Shown: positions 2,875 to 47,012 of the stretch, piece by piece
How positions within the stretch are numbered: the stretch's first letter is position 1
Layout of the letters: the number at the start of each line of letters is the position of its first letter
IMG/VR virus record: IMGVR_UViG_3300028393_000019
Coordinates: 1-64,000 of that record
Reading direction: 5' to 3' (one strand)
DNA length: 64,000 nt
Notes under the pieces: generated by a model
Told to the model about the DNA's origin: nothing
What the model saw: the letters and a program-made list of their open reading frames with translations, nothing else
The model's database searches: none
Position numbers and translations under genes: made by a program

Positions 2875-3201
2875 ATGGCACTTAATGCACAACAGATAAC
2901 AACTTCACCATTAGTAGTAACACTACCTGCGGTCACAGCACCCAGCATTGGAAATGCCATTACTTCAATTATAATTTGCAACACCAGTAGCAGTGTTACA
3001 GACACAGTGACAGTATGGGCAGTTCCTAGCGGGCAGTCAGCCAGCACTGTCAATATGATTATTAATGCATTACCAGTTCCGCCAACAGAAACTGTAAGTT
3101 TAGATCAAGAAAAACTAGTGTTGGGCACAGGTGATGCTGTGTATGTGCAAGCAGGAGCAACATCAAACTTGTCAATAGTCGTAAGTTCACTACCAGTATA
3201 A
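2875..3201 (+). CDS. small beta-sandwich virion protein (paralogue family with 7351 and 28254)
   Basis: 108 aa, SD AAGGA; pattern 'IIICNT...TVTV...P...KLVL..GD.VYV.A'. Confidence 0.65.
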   Translation: MALNAQQITTSPLVVTLPAVTAPSIGNAITSIIICNTSSSVTDTVTVWAVPSGQSASTVNMIINALPVPPTETVSLDQEKLVLGTGDAVYVQAGATSNLSIVVSSLPV

Positions 3202-4967
3202 TGAGATATTTAAAACGTCAAAATATTAATCGTAGAGTTGCCAACGATACAACTCTATATTCAGATGTTAGCAACACTAACGTCTTTGTGAGCCCTGTTA
3301 ATTCAGGTAGCCTAGTGCTACCCAACGGCACTACAGGTCAACGAAACGGTACAAATTTGGGATCCATGCGCTACAATACTTCAACAAACCAAGTTGAAGT
3401 GTATCAAGGATCAGCAGGCCTTAGTACCGCCAACTGGAGAGCATTGCGTTTTAAAGAAAGTAATCCCATAATCCAACAAAATCTAGGAGCAGGTGACGGC
3501 CTAAATACATTATTTGGTCCGCTAAACAGTGCCTACAACACAGATAAGTTATACTATTCCAGCAACATTCCTTCAGCTGGTGGTGCAGCCGCTGGTCAGT
3601 TTGGGGGACAGAACGCTTTAGTGGTAGTAGAAAATGTGCTACAACTGTCTGGTATAAATTATTCAGTGACAGCAAGCCCGTCAGTGGGCGGAGAAACCTA
3701 TACCGGATCAGTTAGCCAATCAGCCGCTACTGGAGCAACCACACTGTATTTCAGCACCAGTTTAGTTGGCACTGCTACCAGTAGCAGTGGAACTATTTCA
3801 TTTACAGGATTTATTTCAAACGGTTCTGCTCCTTCGGGCACTGCTGGAACCACACTCACAGTAACAAGCGGGTCTACACCAATAGCAGGCCAAACACTGA
3901 GCAACAACGGTGTCACAGCCGGAACTACCATTGTGGCAGCAAACTCTTCAGCGTTCACGGGCTACACCAGCGGCACAACATTGACAGTGACATCAATAAC
4001 ATCCAGTATTATTACCTTGGGTATGGTTATCACTGGTAGCAGTATGGCTGCTGGAACTTATATCAGTGCATTAGGATCCGGCGTAGGTGGTGCAGGCACA
4101 TATACCTTAAGCACAAGCCAATCAGTAGCCAGTGGTTCCAGCGGTAGTCCTGTGAACTTGACAGGAACTAGTTACACAGTCAGTGTCAGTCAGTCTACTG
4201 CCAGCGGAAGTATCACAGCCGCAGGGGTAACAGCCACTATAAACTTTGCCGCACAAGCCGGCAATCCATTTGCTATAGGTGATACTATCACAGTATCTGG
4301 ATTTACTCCGACAGCATACAATGGTAAATTTTCAGTAACAGCCAGCTCAACAACCAGTGTGAGCTATTTTAGTCCAGCAACAGGTTCCATGACCATCGCT
4401 GGAACTGTGACCAGTAATACAGCAGTTTATCCGGCAGTGAATATTCTTGGAGCAGTAGTCAGCGGGCCAGCCAGCATACCAAGTTCAACCACACTGAGCT
4501 CAGTTATTATTGTAGGAACAGCAGGACAATTTCAATGCACCAGTACTACGCTAGCTGTTAATCAAGCAATCACAATCAGCGGAACAGCTGGACAAACTTA
4601 TCCAACAGCAGGCAGTATTAGCGGTTATTCAAATCCTACTACCTATTATATTATTACAACCAACGGAACTACTACATTTACTCTTAGTTTGTCACCTGGT
4701 GGAACAGCCATAACAACAGCAGTTGGAACTCCTACAGGATTAACCTACACAGTACCAACTTGTGTGTTGAGTTATCTAACAGATGCTACAACAGACGCAT
4801 TGCTCAGTATCAATATCAGCAAACCCACTATTACATCAACGATTGCAGTGCTGACGTCTGTTACAATTACAGAACCAACGACTACATATACAGGCAACTA
4901 CCTGCAATTTACCAGTCCAGTTCCCTACGGCAAAGTAGTCACAGTACTACTAGGGTTTGACGCCTAA
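3201..4967 (+). CDS. virion structural/fibre protein with inserted modules
   Basis: 588 aa; 'LPNGTTGQR...GSMRYNT...VEVY' fibre motif; several repeated beta modules. Confidence 0.65.
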   Translation: MRYLKRQNINRRVANDTTLYSDVSNTNVFVSPVNSGSLVLPNGTTGQRNGTNLGSMRYNTSTNQVEVYQGSAGLSTANWRALRFKESNPIIQQNLGAGDGLNTLFGPLNSAYNTDKLYYSSNIPSAGGAAAGQFGGQNALVVVENVLQLSGINYSVTASPSVGGETYTGSVSQSAATGATTLYFSTSLVGTATSSSGTISFTGFISNGSAPSGTAGTTLTVTSGSTPIAGQTLSNNGVTAGTTIVAANSSAFTGYTSGTTLTVTSITSSIITLGMVITGSSMAAGTYISALGSGVGGAGTYTLSTSQSVASGSSGSPVNLTGTSYTVSVSQSTASGSITAAGVTATINFAAQAGNPFAIGDTITVSGFTPTAYNGKFSVTASSTTSVSYFSPATGSMTIAGTVTSNTAVYPAVNILGAVVSGPASIPSSTTLSSVIIVGTAGQFQCTSTTLAVNQAITISGTAGQTYPTAGSISGYSNPTTYYIITTNGTTTFTLSLSPGGTAITTAVGTPTGLTYTVPTCVLSYLTDATTDALLSINISKPTITSTIAVLTSVTITEPTTTYTGNYLQFTSPVPYGKVVTVLLGFDA

Positions 4968-4978
4968 GGAGGATTGAC

Positions 4979-6142
4979 ATGTCAGTCCAGCAGGGAAGAA
5001 TAGGTGGCCCGCTACTAGCAGACAACCTAGTACGCAATGGTACAAATTTAGCGTTTGACAACAAAGTCCTATATCTCGATGTGGTTAACAAACGCATCGG
5101 GTTCAACAATGCGTCTCCAGTTAACGATCTATATGTGCCTACAGCAATTGACACAGTAAACTTAACAGTTGATACTACAGCAGACATTGGCAACTTTGTG
5201 GTCAGCGGCAGCACAATTCAGTACGTGCTTGGCAATTCAATAACAATTAGTCCCAGTCAAAACATAAACCCCAGAATTATCACTCCGGGATTAAGCACTG
5301 CAAACTTGTATTTGTACAGCAATACCTTAAGCAATACTGTTACCAACAACGCTGTGAATTTTTCACCCAACGGCACTGGCAGTATTAATTTTGCCAACGA
5401 CTCGGGTAATGTACAAACAACAGTAAATGGCAGTTTACATGCTACTGGAAACATAACATTTGACGGTAGTATTACACTGGGCACCAGCACCAGTAATCGT
5501 ATAACAATTACAGCAGAAGTGGCCAGTAATATTGTTCCCGTGGGAATAGTTAATCAATCTGCACAAAATGTAATAAGCCAATCTAGCCCATTGTTTACAG
5601 GAGTAGATGATGAGTCTTTGTTGTATATAGGCACATCATATGAGTGGGATTTGGGTAGCAGTGCTTTGCAATGGAATAATCTGTATTTGACTACGCTGAC
5701 TGTAGGGCAAACCACATCGGGCCCACTTGCACTAACAACTGCAAATTTTGGCAATATAAATTTTACAGGCAATACTATATCCGACACTGTAGGAGATATT
5801 AATTTTTCTACTACGGGCACCGGGTCAGTTAGGATCAATGGTTCTGATTTCTTCAGCACTGCCAACACCTTCAAAATTGCCAGTAATATGAGTTTGGCTG
5901 TTACTGGCCAGGGATACTACAAATTCTCAGGCACCAACGGTGTAGCAGTTCCTGTGGGAACCAACCTTAATCGACCAGCAAGCCCAGTAGAAGGCACTGT
6001 AAGATATGACACCACATTGGCCTATGTGGAAGTTTATAGTTCAAGCCAAGGTTGGATTCCGGCCTATGGTCAAAATGCCAATGCTACTGTGCAAGACGTC
6101 AGTGACGCTTCAACATTGTACAGCATCGTCTTTGGCTACTAA
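4979..6142 (+). CDS. tail fibre-like structural protein (paralogue of 6283..7347)
   Basis: N-terminal GRIGGPLLADNLVRNG-NLAF; C-terminal 'VPVGTNLNRP...GTVRYDT...VEVY'; SD AGGAGG. Confidence 0.65.
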   Translation: MSVQQGRIGGPLLADNLVRNGTNLAFDNKVLYLDVVNKRIGFNNASPVNDLYVPTAIDTVNLTVDTTADIGNFVVSGSTIQYVLGNSITISPSQNINPRIITPGLSTANLYLYSNTLSNTVTNNAVNFSPNGTGSINFANDSGNVQTTVNGSLHATGNITFDGSITLGTSTSNRITITAEVASNIVPVGIVNQSAQNVISQSSPLFTGVDDESLLYIGTSYEWDLGSSALQWNNLYLTTLTVGQTTSGPLALTTANFGNINFTGNTISDTVGDINFSTTGTGSVRINGSDFFSTANTFKIASNMSLAVTGQGYYKFSGTNGVAVPVGTNLNRPASPVEGTVRYDTTLAYVEVYSSSQGWIPAYGQNANATVQDVSDASTLYSIVFGY

Positions 6143-6155
6143 AATTCAAATCAGC

Positions 6156-6161
6156 TAAATA
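6156..6161 (+). promoter_or_regulatory. T4-type late promoter core (TAAATA)
   Basis: CTAAATA in intergenic DNA; the same motif precedes many structural genes in the window. Confidence 0.55.
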
Positions 6162-6168
6162 CTTTTAC

Positions 6169-6270
6169 TGCGGTGCTTGACCAAGCATTGCGATATCCGA
6201 CTGTGGTAAACCCGCAAAGAGCCCTTGAAACAAGGGATGAAAAGGTGGTTATCCGTGAAACACGGGGGTA
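6169..6270 (+). ncRNA. candidate structured 5' leader / cis-regulatory RNA (four hairpins)
   Basis: Stems 6169-6192, 6202-6216, 6222-6236 (CCCTTG-AAA-CAAGGG) and 6253-6265 (CCGTG-AAA-CACGG) in a 140-nt intergenic gap of an otherwise tightly packed operon. Confidence 0.45.
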
Positions 6271-6282
6271 CAAGGAGAGCAC

Positions 6283-7347
6283 ATGGCTGTCGGTCGAATT
6301 TCCGGTCCGCTCTTAAAGGATAATTTGCTCCGCAACGGGCAGAATTTGGCCTTTGAGACGAACCTTCTCTATTTAGATGTTGTTAATAGCCGCGTGGGTA
6401 TCAACACAGCCACTCCTACCAACGATCTAAGCGTAAACGGCACAACCCGAACTACAAATTTATACACCAGTGGATCAGCTTCACTGGGGTTACTGACCTT
6501 TTCAGGCAGTACAATAAGCAGTATTAATTCATCAATTACATTTACCCCAAGCGGTCCAAATGCAACTATCTATCAGGGTACTGCACTTGTAGGGAATCTA
6601 AGTCTAACTGGCAATACCCTAGCGTCTACAAACACCAACGGCGCTATCAATATTGTTGCCAACGGTACAGGTGCAATCAATTTAAATTCAGATGTGTTGG
6701 TTACAGGCAACTTGCATGCTACTGGTACAATCACTGCTGACGGAAATATTCAATTAGGCGATATGCCTACAGATACTATCACATTTGCCGGTGAAGTTAG
6801 CAGTAATATTTTACCCGCAACCACTAACACATACACGCTGGGATCTAATCTCCTACGATGGAAAAATGTATACAGTCAAAACGTCAACACTACCAATATC
6901 AATGCTACTACAGGAAATGTAAGTAGTTTTTCAACCACAGGAACGCCCAGCATCACAATTAGTGGTAACACAATCAGCGCCAATACCAGTAACGTAGATA
7001 TCAATTTCACCACTTCAGGAACCAGCGGAGTGGCCTTGGGCAATTTAAAATTTACCACAGGCAGTGTAACCAATACTGCCAATAATGCAGTAACACAACT
7101 GACCAGTACAGGTAATGGGTATTTTCAATTTGCCGGAACCTACGGTGTTGTAGTACCGGTAGGAAACACAGCACAGCGCCCTGCATTTGCAAATTCTACC
7201 ACAGGAATGTTACGTTTCAGTACAGACAATCAATATGTTGAAGTTTACAACGGTATATCATGGACCAGCGTTGCGGGTCTAAGTAGCGGTGTAACTGTTG
7301 CCCAGGCCAGTGATGTGGCATTGGGTGTGGTAATAAGTTTAGGATAA
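6283..7347 (+). CDS. tail fibre-like structural protein (paralogue of 4979..6142)
   Basis: N-terminal GRISGPLLKDNLLRNGQNLAF; C-terminal 'VPVGNTAQRP...GMLRFST...VEVYNG..W'; SD AAGGAG. Confidence 0.65.
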   Translation: MAVGRISGPLLKDNLLRNGQNLAFETNLLYLDVVNSRVGINTATPTNDLSVNGTTRTTNLYTSGSASLGLLTFSGSTISSINSSITFTPSGPNATIYQGTALVGNLSLTGNTLASTNTNGAINIVANGTGAINLNSDVLVTGNLHATGTITADGNIQLGDMPTDTITFAGEVSSNILPATTNTYTLGSNLLRWKNVYSQNVNTTNINATTGNVSSFSTTGTPSITISGNTISANTSNVDINFTTSGTSGVALGNLKFTTGSVTNTANNAVTQLTSTGNGYFQFAGTYGVVVPVGNTAQRPAFANSTTGMLRFSTDNQYVEVYNGISWTSVAGLSSGVTVAQASDVALGVVISLG

Positions 7348-8306: not shown

Positions 8307-11300
8307 ATGGCTGCAGAATTTAAAATTGGAAGATTGAGATTTTCATGGAAGGGTGTATGGACGCCTGCTACTATCTACGCTCGAGATGATGTTGTCAGTT
8401 ATCAAGGTAAAGCCTATGTTTGCCTACTTCCAAATACATCTGATGCTACAAGTTTTTACAACGACTTGTATTACGTTACTCAGACCGGAGCAAGCACACC
8501 ATACTGGAACATGATTGTAGATGGCAAGACTTTTGTCACAGCCAACGGCGGAGCATGGCAAACTGGTCAAGCGTACAGTTTAGGAAACATTGTGTCATTT
8601 GGCGGCGTTATTTATTATGCCAACACCAAACACACTAGCACAGCTTTTGCTAGCCAAGCATCTTATTGGACTCAGTATTCAGAATTTAATGCATGGAGGT
8701 CAGTGGGCTGGCTTCCAAATAATGTCTACGGCAAAAATGATGTGGTCAAATATGGCGGCATTGTTTACAAGTGCATAGCCAACCATACTAGTTCTGCAAG
8801 CAATACACTGGGCTTAGAGGCAAATCAATCAGCATGGACCATTATAGATAGTGGTGTCGAATACAAAGGCACATGGTCATCAAATGTTAGATACAAAACC
8901 AATGACATTGTAAAATACGGTCCGGACTTGTGGTCTGCCATCAACGGACATACCAGTGTCGTAGCTAACACGTTAAGCACTGTTGCTACAACCGGAACCG
9001 CTGGACAATTTTCTTATACCGGCGGCACACTTATTATTGGGCAAGCTGTTACTGTTTCTGGACAACTGGCTTCAACAGCGACTGGATCTATCTCAGGATA
9101 CGCCGGAGCAACAACAACGTATTATGTGAGTGCAACCGATGGAGCCAGCACGTTTACATTATCAAATACCTATGCAAACGCTATTGCAAACACAGGTCAA
9201 CTGACCACTGTTCAGGGAACGTTGACAGGATTAACAGTCAGCATTAATGGTTTTGATCAAGCCAAATGGACCACATGGATGCCAGGATTTGAATACGTTG
9301 GCTCTTGGAATGTTGGTACTGTATACCAAACAGGAGACACTGTATCATATGGTGGATATACCTACTATAGTAAAACTGCTAACAACATAGGTAATACACC
9401 ATCAGTTGATGCGACTGACTGGGGAGTGTTGACACAAGGTTTTAATTTCAGGGGAGAATGGGGTTCTGCAACCAATTATCGAATTGGTGATGTGATTAGG
9501 CGTAATGGCATGTTCTTTGATGCCATTGCTGATAATACTGCACAAGACCCAAGCTCTTATAGTGTTAGCAAAACATATTCCACAACTGGCAGTTCAGGCA
9601 CTGTATTAAAACTCAATTCAGTTTCAGGCATAACGATTGGCATGAATGTTATTGGCAACGGCTTTAGTGCTGGACAAACTGTTATCAACATTGATAATAC
9701 CGCAACTACAATCACAGTCAGTGCAGTAAATGATACAGCACTCACAGATGGTCAATCACTATCGCTAGTGGGTACCAATTATATCAATTGGAAGATAGTT
9801 ATTCCGGGACGCTATTGGACCAAAACCTGGACCGTTGGGACCACATACATAGTGGGCGATTTGGCTGTTTGGCAAAACGGTACTTATGTTTGTGTCCAAA
9901 CGCACACCTCACAACTTTCTCCACAAAATAATCGTCCTGATGCTGATACTACAAATATCTATTGGATATTTTACATACCTCATGCTAGAAAAAATGCAAT
10001 GAATACTATTGGTGATACTGAATACTATTCAAATGCTACTAGTTCTTATACTGCATTACCGATCGGAACTAATCAATATACACTCAAAGCAGTAGCTAGC
10101 ACCGGAGTCACTGGCACCGTAACAACGGCTCCGGCTTGGAATAAAATCAATCAGGTCAATGCTGTTTACTATGTTTCAACAAAAACAGGTATAGACCGTG
10201 CAGACTACGGAACTACTTGGGACCAACCTTGGAAGACCATTGCATACGCATGTAACTTTGTCGGTGCTGGAACTATTAATCAAAACGCAACTGCTCTTAT
10301 CACAGCAAATAAAACTTGGTTGACCACAGAAATGTACTACTGGATGCTGTCTCAAAAAGCGGCCAGTACTAATGGATTTACTCCCAGTTCAGTATTCGAT
10401 CAAACCAAGACTATACGCGATGCAGGATATATCATTGATGCCATAGTGTATGACATGTCACGTGGCGGCAACAGTCAAACAGTCGCAGCCACCCTGGCAT
10501 ATTTTGCATTTGGTAGTTCAACTACATTCATCAATGCTGCCAGTCTAGCAGAACTACCATATTTCCTATCTGGATTACTTCAGTTAGGCACGTTTATACA
10601 AACAGCGTTGACCAATAATGTCGTCGGTAATGGTGCAATATATCAAACCGCAAATTCAATAACACCCGTAGTTTATCAAAAAACAACAAGTGCTGGCCCC
10701 GAGCTGGGAGCAACTGCATTAGCATCTTCATTGCTGAGCATTGTGACCACAGCACTTACTAATCAGAGCACTGCACTGGTACCACCTTCCAACAGCGGAA
10801 TAACTGCCAGTATTTTTGTCAAGACTGGAAGTTATTTCGAAACCCTACCAATTGTGGTGCCCGCCAACGTGGCCATTATTGGGGACGAACTGCGCGGAGT
10901 AACAGTTTCTCCAGCAATTATTTTGACTCTGCAATGCACTGCTACTACAAGTGGCAGCAATCTAGTTACAGTTAACAGTACCAGTCAATTTGTAGATCAA
11001 ACAGCATTGCAGTTTGTTAACCCAAGTATTACTTCTGTCATAGGAACAAATCCATATTATGGGTTTGGCGGCATAACTCCAGGAACAACTTATTATGTTG
11101 TAGGTGCAACAATCACTGCTACACAATTTAAAATTACTGCATTGTCTGGAACGTATTATTCTGTCTCGGGAACCAATATAACAGCAACTGGTACAGGTGC
11201 AACATTCAATGTGACCCCAGTACAAGATGGAACCTACTCTGTGAGCGTGGCATATGGCGGCACAAACTATGTGGCTGGTAGCACAATAAGAATTTTAGGC

Positions 11301-14300
11301 AGTAGTCTTGGAATCGCCTCAACTGTTGCAGGATTTTTTATAACAGGATTCCAATACACAATTATATCTGTTGGCACAACTGATTTTACTGCAATTGGTG
11401 CTAGTGCCAGTACTGTTGGTATAAGATTTACTGCAACAGGAGTTGGCACTGGTACTGGTACTGCAACCATAACTGCTAACGATATTATCATTACAGTGGC
11501 GTCTGTGATCTCAGGAGCCATAGCAACAGTGACCGTAGTTGGCTCAACAATATTTCCATTGACAACCGGCGTAGGCAGTGTTGCATTAGGCACTCATATG
11601 ACAGTTTATGCGGGTGACTGTGTGAAAGACATGTTCCGTCTTCGCAACGGTTCTGGTTTGCGCAACATGACTCTAACCGGGCTGTTAGGTACCTTATCAA
11701 ATCCAGATGCTTTTTATATACAACGACCTACAGGAGGAAGTTATGCTAGCTTAGATCCCGGGTCGGGCCCAACTGACACCACAGCGTGGATCTATCGACG
11801 TAGCCCATATGTTCAAAATATTTCATCATTTGGTAACGGCTGTACTGGTTTAAAGATTGACGGTAATCTACACAATGGCGGTAATAAATCAATTGTTTGT
11901 AATGATTTCACACACATTATTAGTGACGGTGTCGGACTTTGGTGTACTGGTCCAGGCGCATTAACAGAAGCAGTATCTATATTTTCATACTACGGATACT
12001 GTGGATATTTTGCAGAAAATGGTGGACGTATACGTGCTACCAACGGTAACACTAGTTATGGTACATACGGCGTTATTGCAGAAGGTTACGACCTCACAGA
12101 AACACCAGCGACCGGCATCGTTTATAATCAAAGTAGCCAAGTACAAGCCCAAGTACAAAGTGCGTTTGGCGCTCAAGCTCAATTGGTAAGATTGACTTTC
12201 TCCAATTCTGGATCGGCCTACAATACAACAACTACTAATTTATTAAATTTCAGCAATAATTTCCTAGGCGGCAGTTGGCTTAATGATTCAAACGTGTCAT
12301 TTAACAAGAATACTACAGCACCGACTGGTCTGACTGAGGCATGGGCTATTGCAGGAAATTCTGCCGGCCCTAACGGAAGTTATGTTTATCAGAATATCAG
12401 TGTGCCAGCGGCTGGCGCAGTTTATAGTAATTTAGGTGGTACAAATATTCTAGGTAGCGGTGGTACCGGCGCCAATAATCCAGCACTGTTCAACGTTACA
12501 GTTACCGCTACTGCATATGTTGTTACTGTATCAGACGGTGGCGCCGGGTATGTAAACGGTAACACATTATATATTGCTGGTAGTACACTAGGCGGTGTTG
12601 ATAATGTCAATGATTGTATCATTACAATAACCGGAGTAAGCGGTAATGTGGTTACAAGTGTATCAAGTGTTGGAACAGTTCCAATTAACAGTGCGTTGGG
12701 ATATACTCTAAGTGCTTATGTGAAAAAAGGCACATCGTCAATTGTTGATTTGTATGCAATATTTTCTGGATCAAGCACAGTGACCAGTAGTATCAGTTAC
12801 AATTTTGATACAGGAGTAGTAACAGCAGGAAATTCTGGTGGCGGATTATTGCCCGTAAACTATGGCGCTATCAATCAACAACTATCAGCAACTGATCCCA
12901 CAGCTGGATGGATAAGAATATGGTTTTCAGTATACGATACAACCGGCTTGAACACACAACTACAATATAGATTGTATCCTAGAGGCTATAATGGCTCCAT
13001 TGGGCAGTACACATTTGTTTATGCGTCCCAGACTGAGTTATCAAAATCTAATTTTACGCCGAGTTTTTACTTGGAAGTAACCAACACATCCAAGTTTACT
13101 GCCTATGCTAATTACAATATTACTGGTGCAGGTACCGGTGTTGTAACAATTGGAGATGAAATTCGTAGCGGTGCAGTGTTTCAATCACGTGTAGTTACAG
13201 ATAGTAATGGTATAACCGGCGGCGCTGGCTATCTTACTGCGTCTAATAATGCTCAAGCAGGTAATCCTCAGTATGTGCAATTATCGCAGGCAGATACGAA
13301 CACTAATGGTAACTATACCGGTATGCGAGTATTCATACAAGGCGGTACGGGCGCAGGCCAATACGGTTATATCTCATATTATAATAGCGGAACTAAAGTA
13401 GCTTGGTTACTAAAAGAATCTTTTTCAGCAGTACCTATAACTGCAACTGCCAGTAGCGGAAGTTTATTAACTACTACGTCAACGGCATCATTATATTTGA
13501 ATCAGCCAGTTCAATTTATTCCCACATACTATACAACTTCGGTTACTTCAACATCTCTAGCAACAACTACAGTTACGCAGGCATTTGGTGGAACAATTAA
13601 TACATTCACAGTTGCAAGCACTGTGGGATTGGTATTTAACCAAGCAGTGACTTTTAGTGGCACAACATTCAGTACAGTTAATCCAACGCAAACATATTAT
13701 ATTTTTGCAATTGTTGACAGCACAACGATACAAATTACTAATCAACCATTTGGCACAGTGTGGCAGTTAATCAGTGGTACTGGTACTATGACTATGAATT
13801 TTAGTTCTAATACAAGTTATCTGCAAGGCTCAACAACCAATATGGTTGTTAATTATCCGATACAGTTTACAGGAACAGCATTAGGTGGAATATCAGTTGG
13901 CACAGTTTACTATATTAACGAAATTGTTAGTTCTACTAGTTTTACTATTTCTTCTACACTTATTAGTTTGACAGTAACAGCATCAACAGCAGGTGTAGTT
14001 AACGGTGCAACCAATGCCTATTGGGGTTCAAATTATCCCAAACTCACTATGGCAGATACTTCATCATTGGTAGCATTGAATCCTGTGATATTTTCTTCTC
14101 CGATGATTGGCGGACTAACAGATTCACAAAAATATTACATTGCCAAAATTCTCAACAGCACAACAATTGCAATATCCACAACAATTATATCAGTAACTGT
14201 AACTAGATTTGAAGCAGGTACAAACTTGATTACTGTTTCCAGTACTACCGGATTTCAACAAGATCATCCAATTAGGTTTGTCGGAGCCGCCATAAATACC

Positions 14301-17084
14301 ATTTCTCCCGAGTCAACTTATTATATTTCAGCTATCAATAACGCTACAACGTTTACTATTACCACATTGCCAGGACAGGCAGTAGTTCAATGTACTGCTA
14401 CTACTACTGGCTATATGACTGCAACAACTTGTCCACAAGCAACTCAGGTTACTACAGCCACAGGCGGCACGATGACACTATCATCAACTTCTGCAAAGAC
14501 CTCATTGTCTCTAGGTATTGGCAGTATGAATGCCACGTTCTCAACTCAGCTATTCGGTGGTCCGCAAATAGGCCAGACATATTATATTCAATCAATTCCC
14601 GATTCATTACACTTCTCAGTAGCACTTAATACCGGAACAATTTCAGGAACCAGTACAAGTGCTAGCCCAATAAGTCTTGCTGACAAAACTGGATCAATGA
14701 GTATTGCCGCGGTGGGTTGGGACCATATCAATCCAGGTACACAGCCGGTCGTAGCACTAGATAGCTCGTCACAGTATTTTATTGAACCAAGAACAACCTT
14801 TACGCAACCTGCATTTACACAGTCAGTTGCAACTTCAGTAGTAGCACTATCTTTAGGGACCACATACGCCACTATGGCGCACGGCAACGGTTATTGGATA
14901 GCATTGGCCAGTTCCGGCACAGTGGCAGCTGGATCCAGTGACGGAACAACTTGGACTAGTATCACTTTACCAGGATCTAGTTTTGTTGGCATAGCATATG
15001 GCAACGGATACTGGGTGATAATTTCAAGTGGTGGTGTATCTAATAGCACATTTGCAATTTCAAAATCTAATGGAGCTGGCTGGCGAACTGTGACTTCTGC
15101 ACCAACAAACTCTTGGAGTAGTATTGCCTACGGCAACGGTACATTTAGTGTGATAGCATCAAATACAAACAATGCAATTTATAGTACTAACTATGGAATC
15201 TCATGGACCTCTGCAACACTGCCGTCATCCGCACCTTGGTCGTGTATGACTTACGGAGGGTCTGCACCTAACAATGTAACTGGTGGACGATTTGTTGCCC
15301 TAGCAAGCGGAGTAAGATACGCAGGCGTGGCCTCTCAAGTAGTGGTAGCTACTGGTACAAGTGCAACTTTTAATGTGGTTGTAAATCCTTCTGCATACAC
15401 TGTTACTGTGGCCAACGGCGGCAGCGGTTATACAGTGGGTGACACTGTGAAAGTTCTTGGAACCAGCGTGGGCGGCACAACCCCAGCCAATGATATTCTT
15501 ATCACAATTAGTGGAGTGAATCCTACCAGTAGCAATGCCGTTGGTTCAGTTACATTTACAGGCACTCCTGTAACTACAACAGCCACCATTGCCGCATACA
15601 GCGCGACTGGAGCCACATGGATCAGCGTTACATTACCTGCTAGCGGTGCTTGGAGTTCAGTCGCATATGGAAACGGTCTGTTTGTAGCAGTTGCTACCGG
15701 CACGGGTGCAACTCCTGTATATTCGCAAGACGGCGTAGTGTGGTATGCGGCAAACAATATTATTTCTGCAGATAAAATCAGTTACGGACAAGGAGTATTT
15801 GTTACAGTATCTGCATCAAGTACAACAGCATACACAAGCGAAAATGGATTTGACTGGAAATCTCGAACAGTTTCAAATGATGGCTACAGTGCAATGGCAT
15901 TTGGATTCGTTGGAGCATCTGGCGCCACCCAATATAATGGAGTATTCTCTACTCTAGCAGGAAGAAACACAGGAAGTGTTATCAGTGCAGGCTGTCAAAC
16001 CAAGGCTCGAGCCAGTATTGCATCAAATATAATTACAAGTCTTAACTTGTTTGAACCTGGTTCTGGATATAGCGTGGCACCATCTGTATCTTTTGTGGAC
16101 CCTAATGTGACCACACTAGCCAGCATCAGTCCACGCATAGCCAACGGAGTGTTAAGTAGTCCAACCTTTGCCAATAGAGGAACTGGATACAATACTAATT
16201 CTACTTCAGTAATTGTAACAGGTAACGGATATGCAGATCAGTATCAAACAGGTTTACAGATAATTTTGAATAATCTAACAAGACTGCCTAGCCCAGGTGA
16301 TAACTTGACTATTACCGGAGTCAGCCAAATTTTCAAAGTCACTAGTGCATACAGTGTGTTTAATACCGTTGCTCCTAACTTAGAAGCTAACGTAAGCGTA
16401 AGTCCAAGTATTAGCACAGCTAACGCCACTGCCAACGGAACAACTGTAAGTATACGTAGCAAATATAGTCAGGCACGATTGACTGGACACGATTTTTTAA
16501 ATATTGGCTACGGAGATTTTATCAACAGTAACTATCCTGGCTTTCCAGTGGGCGCCTATGCGGCTGCCCAAAATAACCAATCAGTTGAAGCCAACTATGG
16601 GCGTGTGTTCTTTACGTCAACTGACCAAGACGGTAACTTCAAAGTTGGTAACTTGTTTGGAGTACAACAAGCCACTGGTATTGTTACCCTAAGTGCAAGT
16701 CAATTTGGATTGAGCGGATTGAGCAGTCTGAGCTTAGGCGGTATTGCAGTAGGCGGATCAAGTGTTGTTGTCAACCAGTTCAGCACTGACAGTACGTTTA
16801 CGGCTAATAGTGATAATGTAATCCCTACACAGAAAGCAATCAAGAAGTATCTAACAGATCGACTATCAGCAGGCGGATCAAACACATTTACAGGACAGCT
16901 GACAGCAGGTACTGTTGTAGTTGGCGGTCCAAACTTTATTAGGTCAACTATACCTGCAGGAGTGATAGGATCGAATGTAAGGTTCTCAGCCTTAGCAAAT
17001 TTTACAGGTCCTAATGCCGCAGTTGACGGTAATTTGCCGGCACTGAGTTTCTTTGCTAGAACTGCATTTGCACGATCACAATAA
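8307..17084 (+). CDS. giant multidomain tail fibre/adhesin (CBM5/12-like repeats, pectin-lyase-like beta-helix, beta-propeller repeats)
   Basis: 2925 aa; N-terminal W-x5-Y-x3-D-VV-x-YGG-x2-Y-x-C-x3-HTS repeats; 'DMFRLRNGSGLRNMTL...SPYVQN...KIDG' beta-helix; 'WSSIAYGNG.F' propeller blades. Confidence 0.75.
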   Translation: MAAEFKIGRLRFSWKGVWTPATIYARDDVVSYQGKAYVCLLPNTSDATSFYNDLYYVTQTGASTPYWNMIVDGKTFVTANGGAWQTGQAYSLGNIVSFGGVIYYANTKHTSTAFASQASYWTQYSEFNAWRSVGWLPNNVYGKNDVVKYGGIVYKCIANHTSSASNTLGLEANQSAWTIIDSGVEYKGTWSSNVRYKTNDIVKYGPDLWSAINGHTSVVANTLSTVATTGTAGQFSYTGGTLIIGQAVTVSGQLASTATGSISGYAGATTTYYVSATDGASTFTLSNTYANAIANTGQLTTVQGTLTGLTVSINGFDQAKWTTWMPGFEYVGSWNVGTVYQTGDTVSYGGYTYYSKTANNIGNTPSVDATDWGVLTQGFNFRGEWGSATNYRIGDVIRRNGMFFDAIADNTAQDPSSYSVSKTYSTTGSSGTVLKLNSVSGITIGMNVIGNGFSAGQTVINIDNTATTITVSAVNDTALTDGQSLSLVGTNYINWKIVIPGRYWTKTWTVGTTYIVGDLAVWQNGTYVCVQTHTSQLSPQNNRPDADTTNIYWIFYIPHARKNAMNTIGDTEYYSNATSSYTALPIGTNQYTLKAVASTGVTGTVTTAPAWNKINQVNAVYYVSTKTGIDRADYGTTWDQPWKTIAYACNFVGAGTINQNATALITANKTWLTTEMYYWMLSQKAASTNGFTPSSVFDQTKTIRDAGYIIDAIVYDMSRGGNSQTVAATLAYFAFGSSTTFINAASLAELPYFLSGLLQLGTFIQTALTNNVVGNGAIYQTANSITPVVYQKTTSAGPELGATALASSLLSIVTTALTNQSTALVPPSNSGITASIFVKTGSYFETLPIVVPANVAIIGDELRGVTVSPAIILTLQCTATTSGSNLVTVNSTSQFVDQTALQFVNPSITSVIGTNPYYGFGGITPGTTYYVVGATITATQFKITALSGTYYSVSGTNITATGTGATFNVTPVQDGTYSVSVAYGGTNYVAGSTIRILGSSLGIASTVAGFFITGFQYTIISVGTTDFTAIGASASTVGIRFTATGVGTGTGTATITANDIIITVASVISGAIATVTVVGSTIFPLTTGVGSVALGTHMTVYAGDCVKDMFRLRNGSGLRNMTLTGLLGTLSNPDAFYIQRPTGGSYASLDPGSGPTDTTAWIYRRSPYVQNISSFGNGCTGLKIDGNLHNGGNKSIVCNDFTHIISDGVGLWCTGPGALTEAVSIFSYYGYCGYFAENGGRIRATNGNTSYGTYGVIAEGYDLTETPATGIVYNQSSQVQAQVQSAFGAQAQLVRLTFSNSGSAYNTTTTNLLNFSNNFLGGSWLNDSNVSFNKNTTAPTGLTEAWAIAGNSAGPNGSYVYQNISVPAAGAVYSNLGGTNILGSGGTGANNPALFNVTVTATAYVVTVSDGGAGYVNGNTLYIAGSTLGGVDNVNDCIITITGVSGNVVTSVSSVGTVPINSALGYTLSAYVKKGTSSIVDLYAIFSGSSTVTSSISYNFDTGVVTAGNSGGGLLPVNYGAINQQLSATDPTAGWIRIWFSVYDTTGLNTQLQYRLYPRGYNGSIGQYTFVYASQTELSKSNFTPSFYLEVTNTSKFTAYANYNITGAGTGVVTIGDEIRSGAVFQSRVVTDSNGITGGAGYLTASNNAQAGNPQYVQLSQADTNTNGNYTGMRVFIQGGTGAGQYGYISYYNSGTKVAWLLKESFSAVPITATASSGSLLTTTSTASLYLNQPVQFIPTYYTTSVTSTSLATTTVTQAFGGTINTFTVASTVGLVFNQAVTFSGTTFSTVNPTQTYYIFAIVDSTTIQITNQPFGTVWQLISGTGTMTMNFSSNTSYLQGSTTNMVVNYPIQFTGTALGGISVGTVYYINEIVSSTSFTISSTLISLTVTASTAGVVNGATNAYWGSNYPKLTMADTSSLVALNPVIFSSPMIGGLTDSQKYYIAKILNSTTIAISTTIISVTVTRFEAGTNLITVSSTTGFQQDHPIRFVGAAINTISPESTYYISAINNATTFTITTLPGQAVVQCTATTTGYMTATTCPQATQVTTATGGTMTLSSTSAKTSLSLGIGSMNATFSTQLFGGPQIGQTYYIQSIPDSLHFSVALNTGTISGTSTSASPISLADKTGSMSIAAVGWDHINPGTQPVVALDSSSQYFIEPRTTFTQPAFTQSVATSVVALSLGTTYATMAHGNGYWIALASSGTVAAGSSDGTTWTSITLPGSSFVGIAYGNGYWVIISSGGVSNSTFAISKSNGAGWRTVTSAPTNSWSSIAYGNGTFSVIASNTNNAIYSTNYGISWTSATLPSSAPWSCMTYGGSAPNNVTGGRFVALASGVRYAGVASQVVVATGTSATFNVVVNPSAYTVTVANGGSGYTVGDTVKVLGTSVGGTTPANDILITISGVNPTSSNAVGSVTFTGTPVTTTATIAAYSATGATWISVTLPASGAWSSVAYGNGLFVAVATGTGATPVYSQDGVVWYAANNIISADKISYGQGVFVTVSASSTTAYTSENGFDWKSRTVSNDGYSAMAFGFVGASGATQYNGVFSTLAGRNTGSVISAGCQTKARASIASNIITSLNLFEPGSGYSVAPSVSFVDPNVTTLASISPRIANGVLSSPTFANRGTGYNTNSTSVIVTGNGYADQYQTGLQIILNNLTRLPSPGDNLTITGVSQIFKVTSAYSVFNTVAPNLEANVSVSPSISTANATANGTTVSIRSKYSQARLTGHDFLNIGYGDFINSNYPGFPVGAYAAAQNNQSVEANYGRVFFTSTDQDGNFKVGNLFGVQQATGIVTLSASQFGLSGLSSLSLGGIAVGGSSVVVNQFSTDSTFTANSDNVIPTQKAIKKYLTDRLSAGGSNTFTGQLTAGTVVVGGPNFIRSTIPAGVIGSNVRFSALANFTGPNAAVDGNLPALSFFARTAFARSQ

Positions 17085-17129: not shown

Positions 17130-20100
17130 ATGGCAGAATTTAAACTAGGTAGAATTAAGTTTGTGTACCAAGGTCCTTGGGCACAAAACAACGCATATGT
17201 AGTTGACGACGTGGTTACTGTAAGCGGTAAAACGTATATTTGCGTAGTTAGTCATACTTCTACAAACTCAGCAACAGGGTTTGCTACAGATTTAGCTTAC
17301 AATCCTACCAACTGGAATTTGATTGCCGACGGAGCAAAATGGATCGGAGCATGGTCAAATGGAACATACTATAATGTTAGCGACCAAGTATCATACGGCG
17401 GCGTAGTTTATCAATGCTTAACCTCGCATACTAGCACAGCATCAACAGCTACAATAACTGCGACAGGATTTACAGTTTTTGCAGGAACAGCAACCTTGAC
17501 TTATGCCAGCCAAGTAGTTCAACCATTCCTTGTCGGATCAACTGTTACTCTTTCAGGATTCAGCCCAAGTACTACTAGCACTCCTAGTACAGTTAACTCA
17601 ACATTTACAGTTGCAAGTTGTACAACAACACAAATTACATTTGCAATAACTGGCACATATACTGTATCAATCTTGGGTACAGTGTCTGGTACAAGTCAGC
17701 TAGGACTCGAGCAAGACCAAAGCAAGTGGGTAGCCTTTGCCAGTAACTTTAATTGGTCTCAGGGCTGGTCTACCAACTATCGATATAAAGTTCGTGACCT
17801 AGTCACCAACGGTGGCTATACATACGTTTGTAATACTGCTCACGTCAGTGCCAACACAGTTGCCCTAGGCCTAGAAGCAGATCTTTCTAAATGGGACACA
17901 TTCAATGCAGGAATTATATATCGCCAAACATGGAGCGGTAGCAGTGTAACATATCGCCTAAATGATGTTGTTACCTATGGCGCCGATCTATGGATTTGTA
18001 CAACTGCACATACGTCAACGGGAACTGTATTAGATGTAACTAAATTTAGTATTTTTGTTAACGGTTTTGAATTTTCAAACAGTTGGAATTCAACGACAAA
18101 CTATGTTATAGGTGACATGGTCACGTATGGCGGCTACACTTACACTGCTATACAAAACGGAAACGGACAAACTCCTAGTACTGCTACAGGGTATTGGCAA
18201 CCATTTACCACTGGATTTAATTTCCGTGGTGATTGGTCTGGATCAAACAGTTACAGAATTGGTGATGTTGCCCGTGTTAGTGGATATACATATGTGGCGG
18301 CACTTGATAACACTGTACAACTTGTTCAAGCTATTGCTACAACAGTTTCTAGTGACGGTACTCGCCCTAATCAAATCACTATAGCCGCAGGTATTACTAT
18401 TACTGGTGCCAGTGTTACATCAACTACTGCTACACTAACTTATGCTTCACAATCACAAATTCCGTTTGTTGCAGGACAAACTATTGTAGTTGCCGGTGTG
18501 ACTAATACCGCTTACAACGGTACATTTATTGTAACAGGAACACCAAGTGTAACACAGGTGCAATATACACTGACTGGAAGTCCGGCAAGTAGTTCAGGCG
18601 GAACAGTTTCAGCAACAACTGCAAACTTGATTGTGGGATTACCAATTACATTTGGAACAGCATTGGGTAATTTGTTGACCACTGGCCAATATTATGTAAA
18701 TACGATCCCAGACAGTTCGCATTTTACTGTAACTGCAACACAGTTTAGTGGAACAGCTTTTGCGTTAGTATCTGCTACAGGTACAAGTGCAGGCACTACC
18801 AATCCTAAACCACCATTTACCACATATTGGAGTCAGTTGAATTCGGGATTCAAATGGAATCCGACAAACAATTCTTATTCAGCGGTAGCCGGTACCAATA
18901 TTATTGGATCTGGAACTAGTGCGACTTGGAACGTAACTGCAAAGAATACAATTTACACTGTGACACTTAATGCAGGCGGCAGTGGATATGCCAACAGTGA
19001 TACCATAAAGATCTTAGGTACAAGTTTAGGCGGATTAAGTCCTGCCAATGACTTAACAATCACAGTTACTGGAACAAGTAGTGGAGTGATTACAGTATTT
19101 TCATCAACTGGTATTTCAGTCAGCTGGAGTACTAGTGTAACCTACGTAGCTGGAGATACTGTGCTGTGGGGCGTTAGCAGTTATACTTGTGTACTGGCAC
19201 ATGTCAGTGCAACCGGCAATCGCCCAGATAACGATGTAACTGGCACATACTGGAATTTATTGGCCAGCGGTGCTGAGTCAAGTGTATTGACCACACAAGG
19301 TGACACATTTTATTACGGTGCTAATGGACCAACTCGGTTGCCAATTGGTACAGACGGGCAAATCCTGCGTGTAAACAATACTACACCAGCATGGCAATAT
19401 TACGGACAGATCAACAACATTGTTTACGTCAGTCCAGCTGGTGTAGATACATTGGCCAACGGTCAAGGAACTACAATTGACAAGCCGTGGGCCACAATCA
19501 GATATGCATGTTATCAAATTGAAAACGGATATCTAAACCCCAATGCCAGTTTATTACTTGCAGTTAACAAGCAATTCTTATTGAAAGAAGTCAGCAATTA
19601 TGTTACCTACACATATCAAGCCAGTGTAACTGGTACTTCTGGAGGAGCATTCCTTACAGCCAATACAGCAGGCTTAAATGTGGGTATGCCAGTCACATTT
19701 ACTGCCCAAACAGGTAGTTTGACACTAACAGCGGCTGCTATTCCCAGTACTACTGTTTATTACATCAAAGCTATTGTAGCAAATACCAGCTTCACAGTTG
19801 CCAGTACTTATGGCGGAACAGCATTGACTGCTGCCGGTACTGGCACTGCTGTAGCAAAATATTACACATCACTGCCAACAGAAATTGAAAGAGATGCAGG
19901 ATTTACAATTGATGGATTTGTATTTGATCTAAGCCACGGCGGTACGTACAATACAAATCTTAATACGCTGTTGTTCTTTAACACTGCGGGTTCTGATTAC
20001 ATCAACAATTTTGTAAAATATGAAATTACACAGTTTATTGGAGCACAGACTTATCTACTGAGCCTGATAGGTAAGATACTAGCCAACTCGGCACCTGCCA

Positions 20101-23100
20101 ACAACTATCAAGCGTTGAACGGAATCAGTTCTGGTTCTAGAGCAATTCAAAATACAACAAGTGTTGCTACTTCAAGTGTGGAATCTGTTGCAATATCAAC
20201 AATCACATCATTGAGCACTATTCTAACCAATGCTATGGCATTAGGAAATACCAGTCAATTGCCGGCAGTAGTGACACCAGCTACCACAATCAGCGTAAAA
20301 ACTGGCACTTATAATGAAGTGTTACCTATTGTTGTACCATCATACACCGCCATAGTTGGTGACGAACTTCGTAGCACTATCGTTCAACCAGCGGCAGCTA
20401 ATCTTAATTTAGCGACTGACAAACCTAAATCAGTAGCATCTCTTGCACGTATTCAAGCAATATTGCCAACACTATTGGCTAACTCTACTGTAACTGCTAC
20501 TACCGGCAATACACAAACGCAGATTACCACATTGCCAGCAGGCGATACAGGTAGTCAATCGGCAGTGAATTCTGTGATGACTGGCATTGCCACAGTGCAA
20601 GACATGATTAATAACGGCTATCAAGCGACTCCTCCGTTCAGCTTTACAAACCCAACAGGATATAACACAAGTTTCTTAGCAGGCTTTGGTGATGGCGCAA
20701 CTCAAATCAAGAATAACTATACATTCATTAAGTATGAAGTGGCTAACTTTTTAAGCACAAATTACTCCACCCAATGGACTGCATTTGGCGCATCCTTACA
20801 AGCAGAAACATTGCGTGACGTTGGATTTATATTGGACGGCCTACAGTATGACATGACTTATGGTTGTAATAATCAAAGTCTTATTAATGGTAGCGCATAC
20901 TACTCATTAAATATTCTTCAAATTAGAGCTTCTTATTTGCCATCAACCGTGGCTTCTTTACAGCGTGTAGCAGGTATTATCAGTCAGATCGTAACAGCTA
21001 CAAGCGTTACTGCAACATCACAAACTGCTCCTTATACAGCAACACAATCAACTAGTGGTACAGCAGGATCAGCTGCCGCGGCAGCCTTTGCGGCGGCTCG
21101 TGTGCAGGACGTAATCTACTGGATAAACAACGGATTTGCCAATACAAGTACTTCAGCAGTAACTGGTAGTATTGCTACAACTGCTGGCGGAACACTAACC
21201 GTATCAGCAGTTACCAATGGAACACTAGTACCAGGAATGCTACTTACCGGTACTGGTGTAAGTACGCCAACATACATTGTAAATCAATCAACTGGTGTAA
21301 CTGCAATTGCCAGTCCAACTTTATCAAGCGGTGGCACAACTGGTACAAACACATTTGTTGTCAGTAGTGCAACTGGTATACTAGCTGGACAACTGGTAAC
21401 AGGTACCAATGTCCCAGCAGGCTCATATGTTATTTCAACTTATACTGCTGGCACAACTATCACTCTAGTTAACTACTGGGGATATCCAAGCAATTTTATT
21501 GCAACAGGCAGCGGAACATACAACTTCTACACAGCAGGCGGAACTGGCACATACTTGGTAAGTGTAAGCCAAACAGTATCAAGCACAACTATCACCGGAA
21601 ACTCAACTATTACTCCGATTACTAGCGGTGCGTATGCATTGGCTTCTACTGCACTACAAACAGCTTATACTATTGCCACTGCTAGAAATAGTGAAATTGC
21701 CAGTGATGCGCAAGTATGGGTACAAAAGTTCTATCAAGCATATTCTATTAGCACAACATTAACCAACAGAGATGCTGGTTTAGTTTCTGCAGGACTAGCA
21801 TGGGACTTATTGTTGCAGTCAAACTTTAATAGTATTGCTATTGGCCGTGCTTACAATAGATTGAACACTAGCGCATTAGCATTATTAGCAAATTCAAACA
21901 ACGAATTAGTAGCTACATTAGGTGCACTAAACTTTGTTGGTTATAAGATGAAACAGATTGTATCTAGTGGTTCTGTAATTAGAGCACAGACTACAATCGA
22001 CGACATGATCCAGTCAATTTATGGAACTGTATCGACAACATTGTCAGTAGCTACGACAAGTACAAACGTATTAACTGTAGGAACTACTACAAACGTGTTG
22101 CCAGGTATGCAAATTTCGTTTACAGGGTTACCAGCAAACATTACAACTACGGCAACATCTACAACAACAAGCACAAACGTAATTAACCTAGCTGCCACAG
22201 CGGCAAGTTTAGGTATTGTTGCTGGCCAGCAAATTTACTTTACAGGTGCAGTTGTTGGTAATTTAGTACCTAATCAGATGTATTATGTAATTAACCCGAG
22301 TGCTAGTACTATTCAAGTTAGTAACACATTTGGTGGAGCTGCCGTATCATTGAATAATGCTACTCCTGCCGCAACTATGAACGTGATAGTAAATAATGCA
22401 GGCGGATTATGGAACAACTACATTTATTATGTAAACACAGTTATTAGCGGAACTACACTAACTATCACTTCGGCTTATAAGAGTGGTACAGCCCTTGTGA
22501 TTAATAATACAGTCAGCGGTATGTCCGCAGTAGTGACTATTAATGCAAGTAGTCAAATTGCTGGAGCAACTCCTGGTGCAGAACGCAACGGAACATTAAC
22601 TTACGATAATACGCAAACCACTGTTCAAGGTTCAGAAATTCTACGTGCTAACATTAATTTCCTAGCAAATGAAGCTAGCGCCTACACAGCCGCAAACTTC
22701 AGCGGTACAGTAACTACTACCGCAACAGATGGTACTATTACAACTTCCGCGGCCCACAATTTAAAAGCAGGTGATCCTGTAAACTTTACAGCAACAACTG
22801 TTGTAACAACAGTTACTGGTACAAATACCAACGGCAATATCACAGTTAATAGTTCAACCGGGATGGTTGTCAACATGCCAGTTTCTTTCACAGGATCAGT
22901 ATTTGGTGGTTTGAGCATAGCAACAACATATTACATTAGAAGTATAAGCGGTACAACTGTTACATTGAGCACAGCATATCCAGCCAGTACCAGTCTATAT
23001 ACTCCAACAAGCACAACCACTGGTAGTGCAACAATGACAGTGGGTGGATTGTTTGGTGGCCTGACTGCAACCAACAGCAATACTGGATTAACACAACTTT

Positions 23101-28235: not shown

Positions 28236-28253
28236 AATTTTGGAGAAATTAAA

Positions 28254-28574
28254 ATGGCAACAGGAAGATTAGGAACTTTTGCACTGGCAGCTACTACTCT
28301 AACTACAGTGTATACTGTACCGAGTAATAACTACGCAGTGTTTAACGTTTCATTTACAAATACAAACTCTACATCAGTGACTATTCGATTGGCAATAGCA
28401 ACATTGGCTACACCTGCGACCAGTGAATATATCGAGTACGATACAACAATCATCCCCAAGGGTGTTTTTGAACGCAGTGGGCTAGTGGCCAACGGAAACT
28501 TATTAATAGTTGCATATTCCAGCGCCTCTGGTGTAAACGCAAACGTTTACGGCATTGAAACATCTACAGTATAA
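28254..28574 (+). CDS. small beta-sandwich virion protein (paralogue of 2875 and 7351)
   Basis: 106 aa; 'TTVYTVP...VSFTNT...VTIRL...YIEYD..I'; SD GGAG. Confidence 0.65.
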   Translation: MATGRLGTFALAATTLTTVYTVPSNNYAVFNVSFTNTNSTSVTIRLAIATLATPATSEYIEYDTTIIPKGVFERSGLVANGNLLIVAYSSASGVNANVYGIETSTV

Positions 28575-28584
28575 GTGAGATATT

Positions 28585-29352: not shown

Positions 29353-29364
29353 TAAGGGAATAAC

Positions 29365-30216: not shown

Positions 30217-30227
30217 TAGAGGCATAT

Positions 30228-31091: not shown

Positions 31092-31101
31092 AAGGTAAAT
31101 T

Positions 31102-34956: not shown

Positions 34957-35208
34957 ATGAACTACAAAGAACAACTTCAAACCATCATCGTAAAAATTAC
35001 CGAGCAAAAAGAAGGTGCTAGCGCAGAACTTGCTAAATTGGAAGAAGAGTTTGCTAACGTGAAATTAAATCCGTATGGCATCACAGCCATTGATTTTGCT
35101 AAACGTCAAGAACTCAGCACAGATGTTCTAAAAATGGAAGGCGTACTCATGGGTTTACAACTTGCATTAGAAACATTTGACGGAGCTCAGCAAGGTGATC
35201 CAGCTTAA
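34957..35208 (+). CDS. small helical/coiled-coil hypothetical protein
   Basis: 83 aa, SD AAAGGA, heptad-like E/K/L pattern. Confidence 0.6.
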   Translation: MNYKEQLQTIIVKITEQKEGASAELAKLEEEFANVKLNPYGITAIDFAKRQELSTDVLKMEGVLMGLQLALETFDGAQQGDPA

Positions 35209-42396: not shown

Positions 42397-42402
42397 TATT
42401 TA
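42397..42402 (-). promoter_or_regulatory. late promoter core (CTAAATA)
   Basis: Overlaps the stop of the 514-aa halogenase, upstream of the SD of the 71-aa gene. Confidence 0.45.
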
Positions 42403-46932: not shown

Positions 46933-47012
46933 AACCAGTTCTTCTCGAAGTTTTTTTGTAGTGTAATATATATCATTGTACACGCAGATGTTCTGCAGAC
47001 CTGAAAGGAACT

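Follow-up and report, generated by a model that had tools for sequence, protein, structure and literature searches.

What does a phage genome keep in the only long intergenic gap of its first 32 kb? The question was raised by the window analysed here, a 64,000-nucleotide stretch comprising positions 1 to 64,000 of the 265,680-bp IMG/VR virus record IMGVR_UViG_3300028393_000019 (estimated to be 72% complete), in which positions 6143-6282 separate an ORF at 4979-6142 from an ORF at 6283-7347, both on the + strand. A sequence-only reading of this gap had pointed to a late promoter core followed by four stems, two of them capped by the same TGAAACA sequence, and had inferred a cis-regulatory RNA, for example a repeated protein-binding operator setting the stoichiometry of a downstream fibre operon, or an undescribed ncRNA. 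Our comparison with more than 130 distinct homologous leaders showed that the gap encodes a conserved, pseudoknotted 5' leader RNA of about 120 nt (6167-6285), without a match in Rfam, found in hundreds of uncultivated freshwater jumbo phages in front of one family of fibre-like genes, whose ribosome-binding region it probably folds up to control translation.

The gap and its genomic setting

The features that had been described in the gap are present, and the observation itself is confirmed. The gap is the only one over 100 nt in the first 32 kb, since the apparent gap at 28236-28584 holds a 106-aa ORF. TAAATA lies at 6156-6161, four stems follow it in the minimum-free-energy (MFE) fold, and TGAAACA occurs at 6226-6232 and 6256-6262, each copy capping a stem (CCCUU/AAGGG and CCG/CGG), with the last stem ending at 6265 and the Shine-Dalgarno (SD) sequence GGAG at 6274-6277. 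On this one sequence, however, the fold is not beyond chance (z = -1.85 on the + strand, with 6 of 200 shuffles folding as well, and z = -1.33 on the - strand), and TGAAACA is itself common in the window, with 24 copies against 17 expected. The evidence that the element is real comes instead from comparison.

The window encodes tail sheath, tail tube, terminase and several tryptophan-halogenase-like proteins, with the terminase being 52% identical to that of Pseudomonas jumbo phage PA5oct and 51% identical to that of Sinorhizobium phage Phosso. The gene behind the gap (6283-7347, +, 354 aa, N-terminus MAVGRISGPLLK) has no Pfam domain, but matches PHROG families of virion structural proteins and belongs to a family of at least 1099 protein clusters, all hypothetical and without Pfam domains. 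Its N-terminal 150 residues or so are conserved, whereas the C-termini vary, giving lengths of 350-905 aa, and look-alike clusters identified with a protein language model carry PTL_trimer, Bactofilin (beta-helix), Mtd_N and Peptidase_S74 domains. “Fibre or receptor-binding protein” is therefore a reasonable label, although an unproven one, as the AlphaFold monomer model was too poor to use (pLDDT 56.6) and a PDB profile search found no solved homologue. Upstream is another fibre-like gene (4979-6142, +, 387 aa), whose stop is 13 nt before the promoter motif, and downstream is the rest of a tightly packed gene string (7351-28235, +) that encodes proteins of 183 aa and 126 aa and then giant ORFs of 2925 and 3701 aa. 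The gene order is conserved in relatives: in the seven related loci examined, the leader gene, two small genes and then a giant ORF of about 2000-2900 aa follow one another wherever the flank reaches far enough.

The promoter motif, TAAATA(C) at 6156-6162 (+), has the character of a T4-type late promoter, that is, a TATAAATA-like -10 element without a -35 that is enriched just upstream of late structural genes. TAAATAC occurs 57 times in the genome, and 25 copies (44%) lie within 130 nt upstream of an ORF start on the same strand, against about 8% expected; for ATAAATAC the figure is 14 of 17, and the sheath and tube genes are among those so preceded. In 24 of the 25 cases the distance to the start codon is 4-50 nt, but here it is 121 nt, by far the longest leader behind such a motif in the genome. 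In homologous loci TAAATA is present in 77 of 77 distinct upstream sequences, 5-6 nt before the first nucleotide of the RNA model in 74 of them. T4 late transcripts start 6 nt after the last A of TAAATA, and by this analogy the predicted transcription start is A6167, which is invariant in a 30-sequence alignment (A2), is where the covariance model match begins, and lies 2 nt before the first hairpin.

Homologous leaders in uncultivated phages

A protein-seeded scan of IMG/VR produced 14 loci, with 48-87% protein identity, in which the leader is much better conserved than either flanking gene. The core 17-mer was found exactly in 40 viral contigs, and a scan with an alignment of the N-terminal domain matched more than 559 stretches, of which the best 80 loci all carry the leader wherever enough upstream sequence was present, with the exception of one distant homologue (L119). 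An independent 19-mer from the 3' half of the leader hit more than 120 contigs, a lower bound, and in all 112 where the start could be read the next gene begins xxGRISGPLLK. A covariance model found exactly one hit in 91 of 92 loci, all 91 in front of the same gene family, as well as one in the whole 265-kb record and one in each of five other records of 245-364 kb, two of which are at least 96% complete. The RNA occurs in a clade of jumbo phages of about 360 kb that also encode ribosomal protein bS21, and the sequencing runs that hold the stretch are freshwater and lake metagenomes.

No RNA family described in Rfam accounts for the element. Rfam 15 (4227 models, including all riboswitch and self-cleaving ribozyme classes) gave no match at gathering score in the 64-kb window, none at E <= 10 in 5900-6500 and none at E <= 1 in seven loci carrying divergent variants of the leader. 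DNA searches of deposited phage genomes with the 2.4-kb region and with a minimal-type leader also found no match, no cultured phage carrying the element, and tblastn with the protein gave only short weak hits to cyanophage and Methylophilales phage structural proteins. A scan of prokaryote genomes used a 15-mer that was too short, as all 120 rows returned were chance hits, none with the rest of the motif, and it says nothing about hosts. A search for a RegA homologue (PF01818) found none, but was uninformative since the control genomes did not respond either. Full-text literature searches turned up no paper describing the element.

Contigs from two lake metatranscriptome libraries cover 6047-6199 and 6183-6443 at 100% identity. 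Such contigs cannot show 5' ends, strand or level, and as the first of them crosses the promoter, read-through transcription or DNA carry-over is possible.

The conserved fold

Conservation and covariation of the stems in related phages had been named beforehand among the tests of a regulatory RNA, and both were found for the core helices. In the model-based alignment of 87 distinct sequences, covering the outer pairs of P1, P2, the pseudoknot and P4, 98.3% of cells are paired, against 88.9% in shuffles and 27-53% in slid controls, 9 of 16 pairs show changes on both sides, and none of 500 shuffles reaches any of the five measures used. Frequent G.U pairs would be A.C mismatches on the other strand, and the structure therefore belongs to the + strand transcript.

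The RNA opens with P1, a 10-bp 5'-terminal hairpin (6169-6178 with 6183-6192) with an almost invariant GACC loop (6179-6182). There are 117 distinct P1 sequences, all of which fold into a hairpin of 6-11 bp, and compensatory changes occur at every pair, the inner pairs covarying in separate analyses that included one of mutual information. The J1/2 linker that follows (AUAUCCGAC, 6193-6201) is clade-specific in sequence and showed no pairing partner in the mutual-information analysis. P2 (6202-6216) is a helix of only 3 bp (U6202-A6216, G6203-C6215 and U6204.G6214) that encloses the 9-nt loop GGUAAACCC; its pairs are UA 79 / AU 7 and UG 76 / UA 7 / CG 3, with 100% of cells paired. Within this loop, AACCC (6209-6213) forms the 5' strand of an H-type pseudoknot, pairing with G6245 and with GGUU (6247-6250), some 30 nt downstream, with U6246 bulged. 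The pair C6213-G6245 is the strongest covariation in the alignment (CG 63, GC 11, AU 6, GU 4, UA 1), A6209-U6250 covaries also (AU 80, UA 5), 99.5% of cells are paired, and these are the top mutual-information pairs. The stem seen here in the sequence-only reading, a local 5-bp hairpin that is also produced by the MFE fold and RNAalifold, was rejected on these grounds: C6213 covaries with G6245 and not with G6205, and the alternative pairing G6205-C6213 is broken in about a quarter of leaders (column 56 is not C in about 22 of 86 rows), while G6205 is invariant in every alignment read.

P3 (6220-6238; A6220-U6238, G6221.A6237 and 6222-6226 with 6232-6236, loop GAAAC) proved to be dispensable, and rests on per-sequence folds rather than covariation. 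It is absent in 57 of 129 distinct leaders, where UGYAAG replaces it, a single hairpin in 42 and a double hairpin in 28, with 60 distinct insert sequences that mostly have GNRA loops. Its TGAAACA occurs in only 1 of 72 P3-bearing leaders, that of this genome, and the identity of the two loops is thus a coincidence. A long-range AGCC/GGUU helix proposed by RNAalifold was an artefact of MAFFT misaligning P3. P4 (6252-6266) pairs 6253-6257 with 6261-6265 around an AAA loop and is closed by a covarying non-canonical pair, U6252.G6266 (columns 118/137: A.G 60, U.U 14, U.G 6, G.U 3). Its second pair is CG 75 / GC 12, and although its loop, unlike that of P3, is conserved, a minority subfamily has a different hairpin with its own covariation.

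Several other readings of the region were discarded. An upstream ORF starting at ATG 6237 is out of frame with the gene, and the ATG is absent in relatives; read-through, frameshift or bypass from the upstream ORF is contradicted by leader lengths of 95-139 nt without 3-nt periodicity and by differing frames; and a hammerhead, HDV-like or pistol ribozyme, considered by eye, does not fit in its core motifs, with the Rfam models also silent.

Probable extension of the fold into the coding region

The structure appears to continue into the first 11 codons of the gene, a feature that, like the pseudoknot, had been missed in the sequence-only reading. Among 153 distinct sequences, synonymous diversity is low at codons 2-4, 6 and 8-11 (diversity index 0.16-0.43), but normal at Arg5 and Ser7 and from codon 12 on (0.6-0.8 for 4- and 6-fold codons). 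Codon 9 is CCG in 91% and codon 10 is CUC in 88% of sequences, yet CCG makes up only 13% of Pro codons and CUC only 2.8% of Leu codons in the large ORFs of this phage. GGAG is conserved in nearly every leader at a near-constant distance from AUG, and its flank (GAGAGC, 6275-6280) is complementary to GCUCUU (6309-6314, the end of codon 9 to codon 11). The flank is either AGC or CG(U), and the alternative form GGGAGCG, found in other clades, complements the same segment in a shifted register. The native duplex averages -9.4 kcal/mol, against -5.6 kcal/mol for synonymous recodings (z = -2.3), with control windows giving z of -0.7 to -0.9, and the SD pairs with this segment in the MFE of 81 of 129 sequences; RNAalifold over the initiation region of all sequences, however, found no single consensus, because the helix uses two registers.

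A further contact is suggested by the P1 loop GACC, which is complementary to GGUC at 6292-6295 (the Gly4 codon plus the first base of Arg5). Gly4 is GGU in 140 of 153 sequences, 92.6% of cells are paired, against 4-52% for slid controls, and the native duplex is -7.8 kcal/mol, against -4.3 kcal/mol for synonymous recodings. With only two double-changed cells, a number reached by 37 of 500 shuffles, the contact is not significant in the shuffle test, and the claim rests instead on the recoding tests and on a targeted retrieval of every leader with the common P4 sequence that reads U-GGA-CG at this place. Six viral contigs and 12 metagenome contigs were found, and those with a readable P1 have GUCC in the loop, in two lineages with unrelated P1 stems, the leader L261 being the one exception. 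Elsewhere AACCUA pairs with UAGGU in one sequence each, and in one clade GACCG pairs with CGGUC. Further exceptions are the clade of leader L104 (3-4-nt loops, GGA-AGA) and a small divergent group without GACC. In line with the contact, three other GRISG-type genes in these loci, which lack the leader, use other Gly/Arg codons (GGA, GGC or GGG with AGA, AGG or CGA). We regard both contacts with the coding region as likely, but not proven.

A proposed translational operator and its alternatives

Taken together, the inference of a cis-regulatory RNA or undescribed ncRNA made in the sequence-only reading is well supported, by conservation, covariation, a fixed position after a conserved late-promoter motif and association with one gene family, whereas its specific idea of a repeated operator of two TGAAACA-capped hairpins is not, so that the interpretation holds in part. 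In the explanation that we favour, to which we would give a probability of roughly 0.5, the gap encodes the 5' leader of a late mRNA that would start at about A6167 and fold into P1, the pseudoknot, the optional P3 and P4, before closing over the translation initiation region through the pairing of the SD flank with codons 9-11 and of the P1 loop with codons 4-5. The SD and AUG would therefore sit inside a large pseudoknotted structure. The most likely function is gene-specific control of translation initiation, probably with repression or throttling as the default, which a trans-acting factor recognising the invariant pseudoknot core would relieve or reinforce. Our preferred candidate is a protein, possibly the unassembled fibre protein itself acting through its conserved N-terminal domain, although nothing here shows that this protein binds RNA. 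The analysis establishes the RNA family, the covariation of its core helices, its position and its exclusive association with this gene; the two coding-region contacts have support short of proof; and the direction of control, the effector, and any binding or repression by the gene product are inferences from sequence alone.

A riboswitch, in which the pseudoknot core would be an aptamer for a small molecule or ion that opens or closes the initiation region, is unlikely but is the strongest of the alternatives. The conservation pattern is typical of an aptamer, with a covarying fold, nearly invariant junction and loop nucleotides (GGUA in the P2 loop, the A-rich strand AAUGYAAG and the GACC loop) and peripheral stems that are variable or dispensable and GNRA-capped, and the element lies immediately 5' of an SD. 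Riboswitch classes, however, usually control several gene families linked to their ligand, and only one structural gene family is found here; the SD is 24 nt beyond the pseudoknot and not part of it, with a variable linker between; and no terminator, and no pairing that competes with the pseudoknot so as to define a switch, was found, although pairing of the SD flank with codons 9-11 is supported. Were this doubtful reading nonetheless true, a riboswitch-like sensor of a host metabolite or signalling nucleotide would gate synthesis of a receptor-binding fibre in freshwater jumbo phages, with an expression platform built from the first eleven codons, and would be the first riboswitch dedicated to a phage virion gene.

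Somewhat less likely still is a constitutive structure that protects the late mRNA from 5'-end-dependent RNases or directs a processing cut. P1 begins 2 nt after the predicted +1 in all leaders, the classical arrangement of stabilising 5' stem-loops such as that of the ompA leader, and the operon is very long (about 22 kb), but a stabiliser needs only a hairpin, which does not explain the invariant pseudoknot core, the GACC loop, P4 or the synonymous constraint on codons 2-11, and the other late genes seen behind TAAATAC in this genome manage with leaders of 4-50 nt. A processive antitermination RNA, like put of phage HK022, that carries RNA polymerase through the 22-kb gene string with its giant ORFs would fit the position directly after the promoter and the stacked hairpins formed by the first 100 nt of the transcript, but an RNA polymerase-binding element has no need of a fold that appears to include the SD flank and first codons of one particular gene, and the downstream 14 kb shows no excess of terminator-like sites (10 found, 12.9 expected); we consider it improbable. 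More remote is a separate stable small RNA acting in trans or as a virion assembly cofactor, as phi29 pRNA does: the compact, conserved fold of about 100 nt has its own promoter and is single copy in the records examined, but there is no terminator between P4 and the SD, the spacing to the start codon is constant, the constraint continues into the coding region, and the RNA-library contig runs continuously from 6183 to 6443. The absence of any RNA function, with the region being conserved DNA such as a promoter with protein-binding sites or a chance set of stems, has only the insignificant single-sequence fold in its favour and is contradicted by the covariation, by the strand-specific G.U pairs and by stems that vary in sequence and length but not in position.

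Structured leaders that control translation are known for phage replication genes and for bacterial ribosomal proteins, but are essentially unknown for virion fibre genes. New here are the RNA family, its target and the apparent use of the first eleven codons in the fold, while structured cis-acting leaders as such are familiar. If it is an operator for the fibre protein, the RNA would show how a giant phage balances fibre supply with assembly, and if it is a ligand sensor, it would be a new riboswitch class. As a compact, well-defined pseudoknot of about 100 nt with rich covariation, it is also directly usable for structure determination and for reporter assays in E. coli without the uncultivated phage, and its minimal-type variant is only about 95 nt long.

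Comparison with known systems

A catalogue of 10,006 candidate structured RNAs from IMG/VR (Fremin et al. 2023, PMC10690425) draws on the same data source and contains the same kind of object, unnamed cis-regulatory candidates upstream of phage genes, for example 12 upstream of gp32; its text mentions no tail or fibre gene motif, although the motif may be listed there without a name. The put RNAs of phage HK022 are likewise structured RNA made from the first roughly 100 nt after a phage promoter at the head of a long transcription unit, but consist of two hairpins without a pseudoknot and are not tied to a start codon. The H-type pseudoknot riboswitches (SAM-II, SAM-V, preQ1-II and fluoride) share with the leader a small pseudoknot with an A-rich third loop and invariant loop nucleotides, located 5' of an SD, but in those classes the SD is part of the pseudoknot and the RNA controls ligand-related genes, whereas here the SD is outside it, the only target is a structural gene and no Rfam model matches.

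The closest mechanistic analogues are autogenous operators. The leader pseudoknot of T4 gene 32 is, like the present one, an H-type pseudoknot in the 5' leader of a single gene of a phage with T4-type late promoters, gene-specific and conserved among relatives, and it too is absent from Rfam (PMC10690425); here, in contrast, the gene is a late fibre-like structural protein, the leader has extra hairpins (P1, P3 and P4), the region down to the start is structured, and there is no sequence similarity. Nearest in topology is the E. coli rpsO (S15) leader, which, with that of the alpha operon (S4), has an upstream hairpin loop that pairs with the start of the coding sequence, so that the SD and AUG lie inside a pseudoknot and protein binding traps the 30S subunit. 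Those operators mimic the rRNA sites of ribosomal proteins; the proposed pairing of the P1 loop with codons 4-5 would give the same topology, but spans about 110 nt, with a second independent pseudoknot lying in between.

Gene Content Around the Leader and Its Gene

The C-terminal 70-100 residues of the two ORFs that flank the leader, at 4979-6142 and 6283-7347 (both within 3201-7347, + strand), match the N-terminal parts of the same PHROG families, for example phrog_25721 and phrog_1417, and in related loci the upstream gene ends in a similar short C-terminal motif (...L/F-G or ...G-Y, then stop), which suggests a shared module. Within the leader itself, a contig from a 2024 freshwater DNA run (X7) joins 6170 to 6247, skipping 76 nt, although with only 21 nt on the shorter side of the junction, and it is probably derived from a relative whose leader differs, or else is an alignment artefact. 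Three of the related loci (L022, L329 and L366) were found to contain further genes with a GRISG-type N-terminus, which are preceded by TAAATA and only a very short leader, without the RNA. Should these prove to be true paralogues, they would be natural controls for the codon constraint.

Downstream, two giant ORFs of 2925 and 3701 aa (8307-17084 and 17130-28235, + strand) follow the fibre-like gene and two small genes without gaps, and the same order, with a first giant ORF of 1960-2947 aa, recurs in the seven related loci wherever the flank reaches far enough. Beyond these are four consecutive ORFs of 255-287 aa (28585-31956, + strand), the first of which has a C-terminal domain that matches tail fibre and tailspike PHROG families, and these are possibly alternative fibre tips. 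Four paralogous genes for tryptophan-halogenase-like proteins (phrog_2928, E-values of 1e-80 to 1e-150) lie at 32553-34169 on the + strand and at 42400-46983 on the - strand, the three on the - strand being in tandem. Between them, at 35177-42158 (+ strand), are eleven back-to-back ORFs of 180-265 aa with overlapping stop and start codons, in what looks like a tandem array of similar-sized genes.

A bS21-Encoding Jumbo Phage Clade

Outside the window, the phage encodes a homologue of the ribosomal protein bS21 (PF01165, 70 bits), located at 153166-153321 on the + strand of its record (G000:C1, locus L372), and four of five related records of 245-364 kb that carry the leader encode one too. This is a bS21-encoding jumbo phage clade, and its genes use clear GGAG-type SD sequences, whereas the bS21 phages of PMC9723584 are predicted to infect Bacteroidetes.
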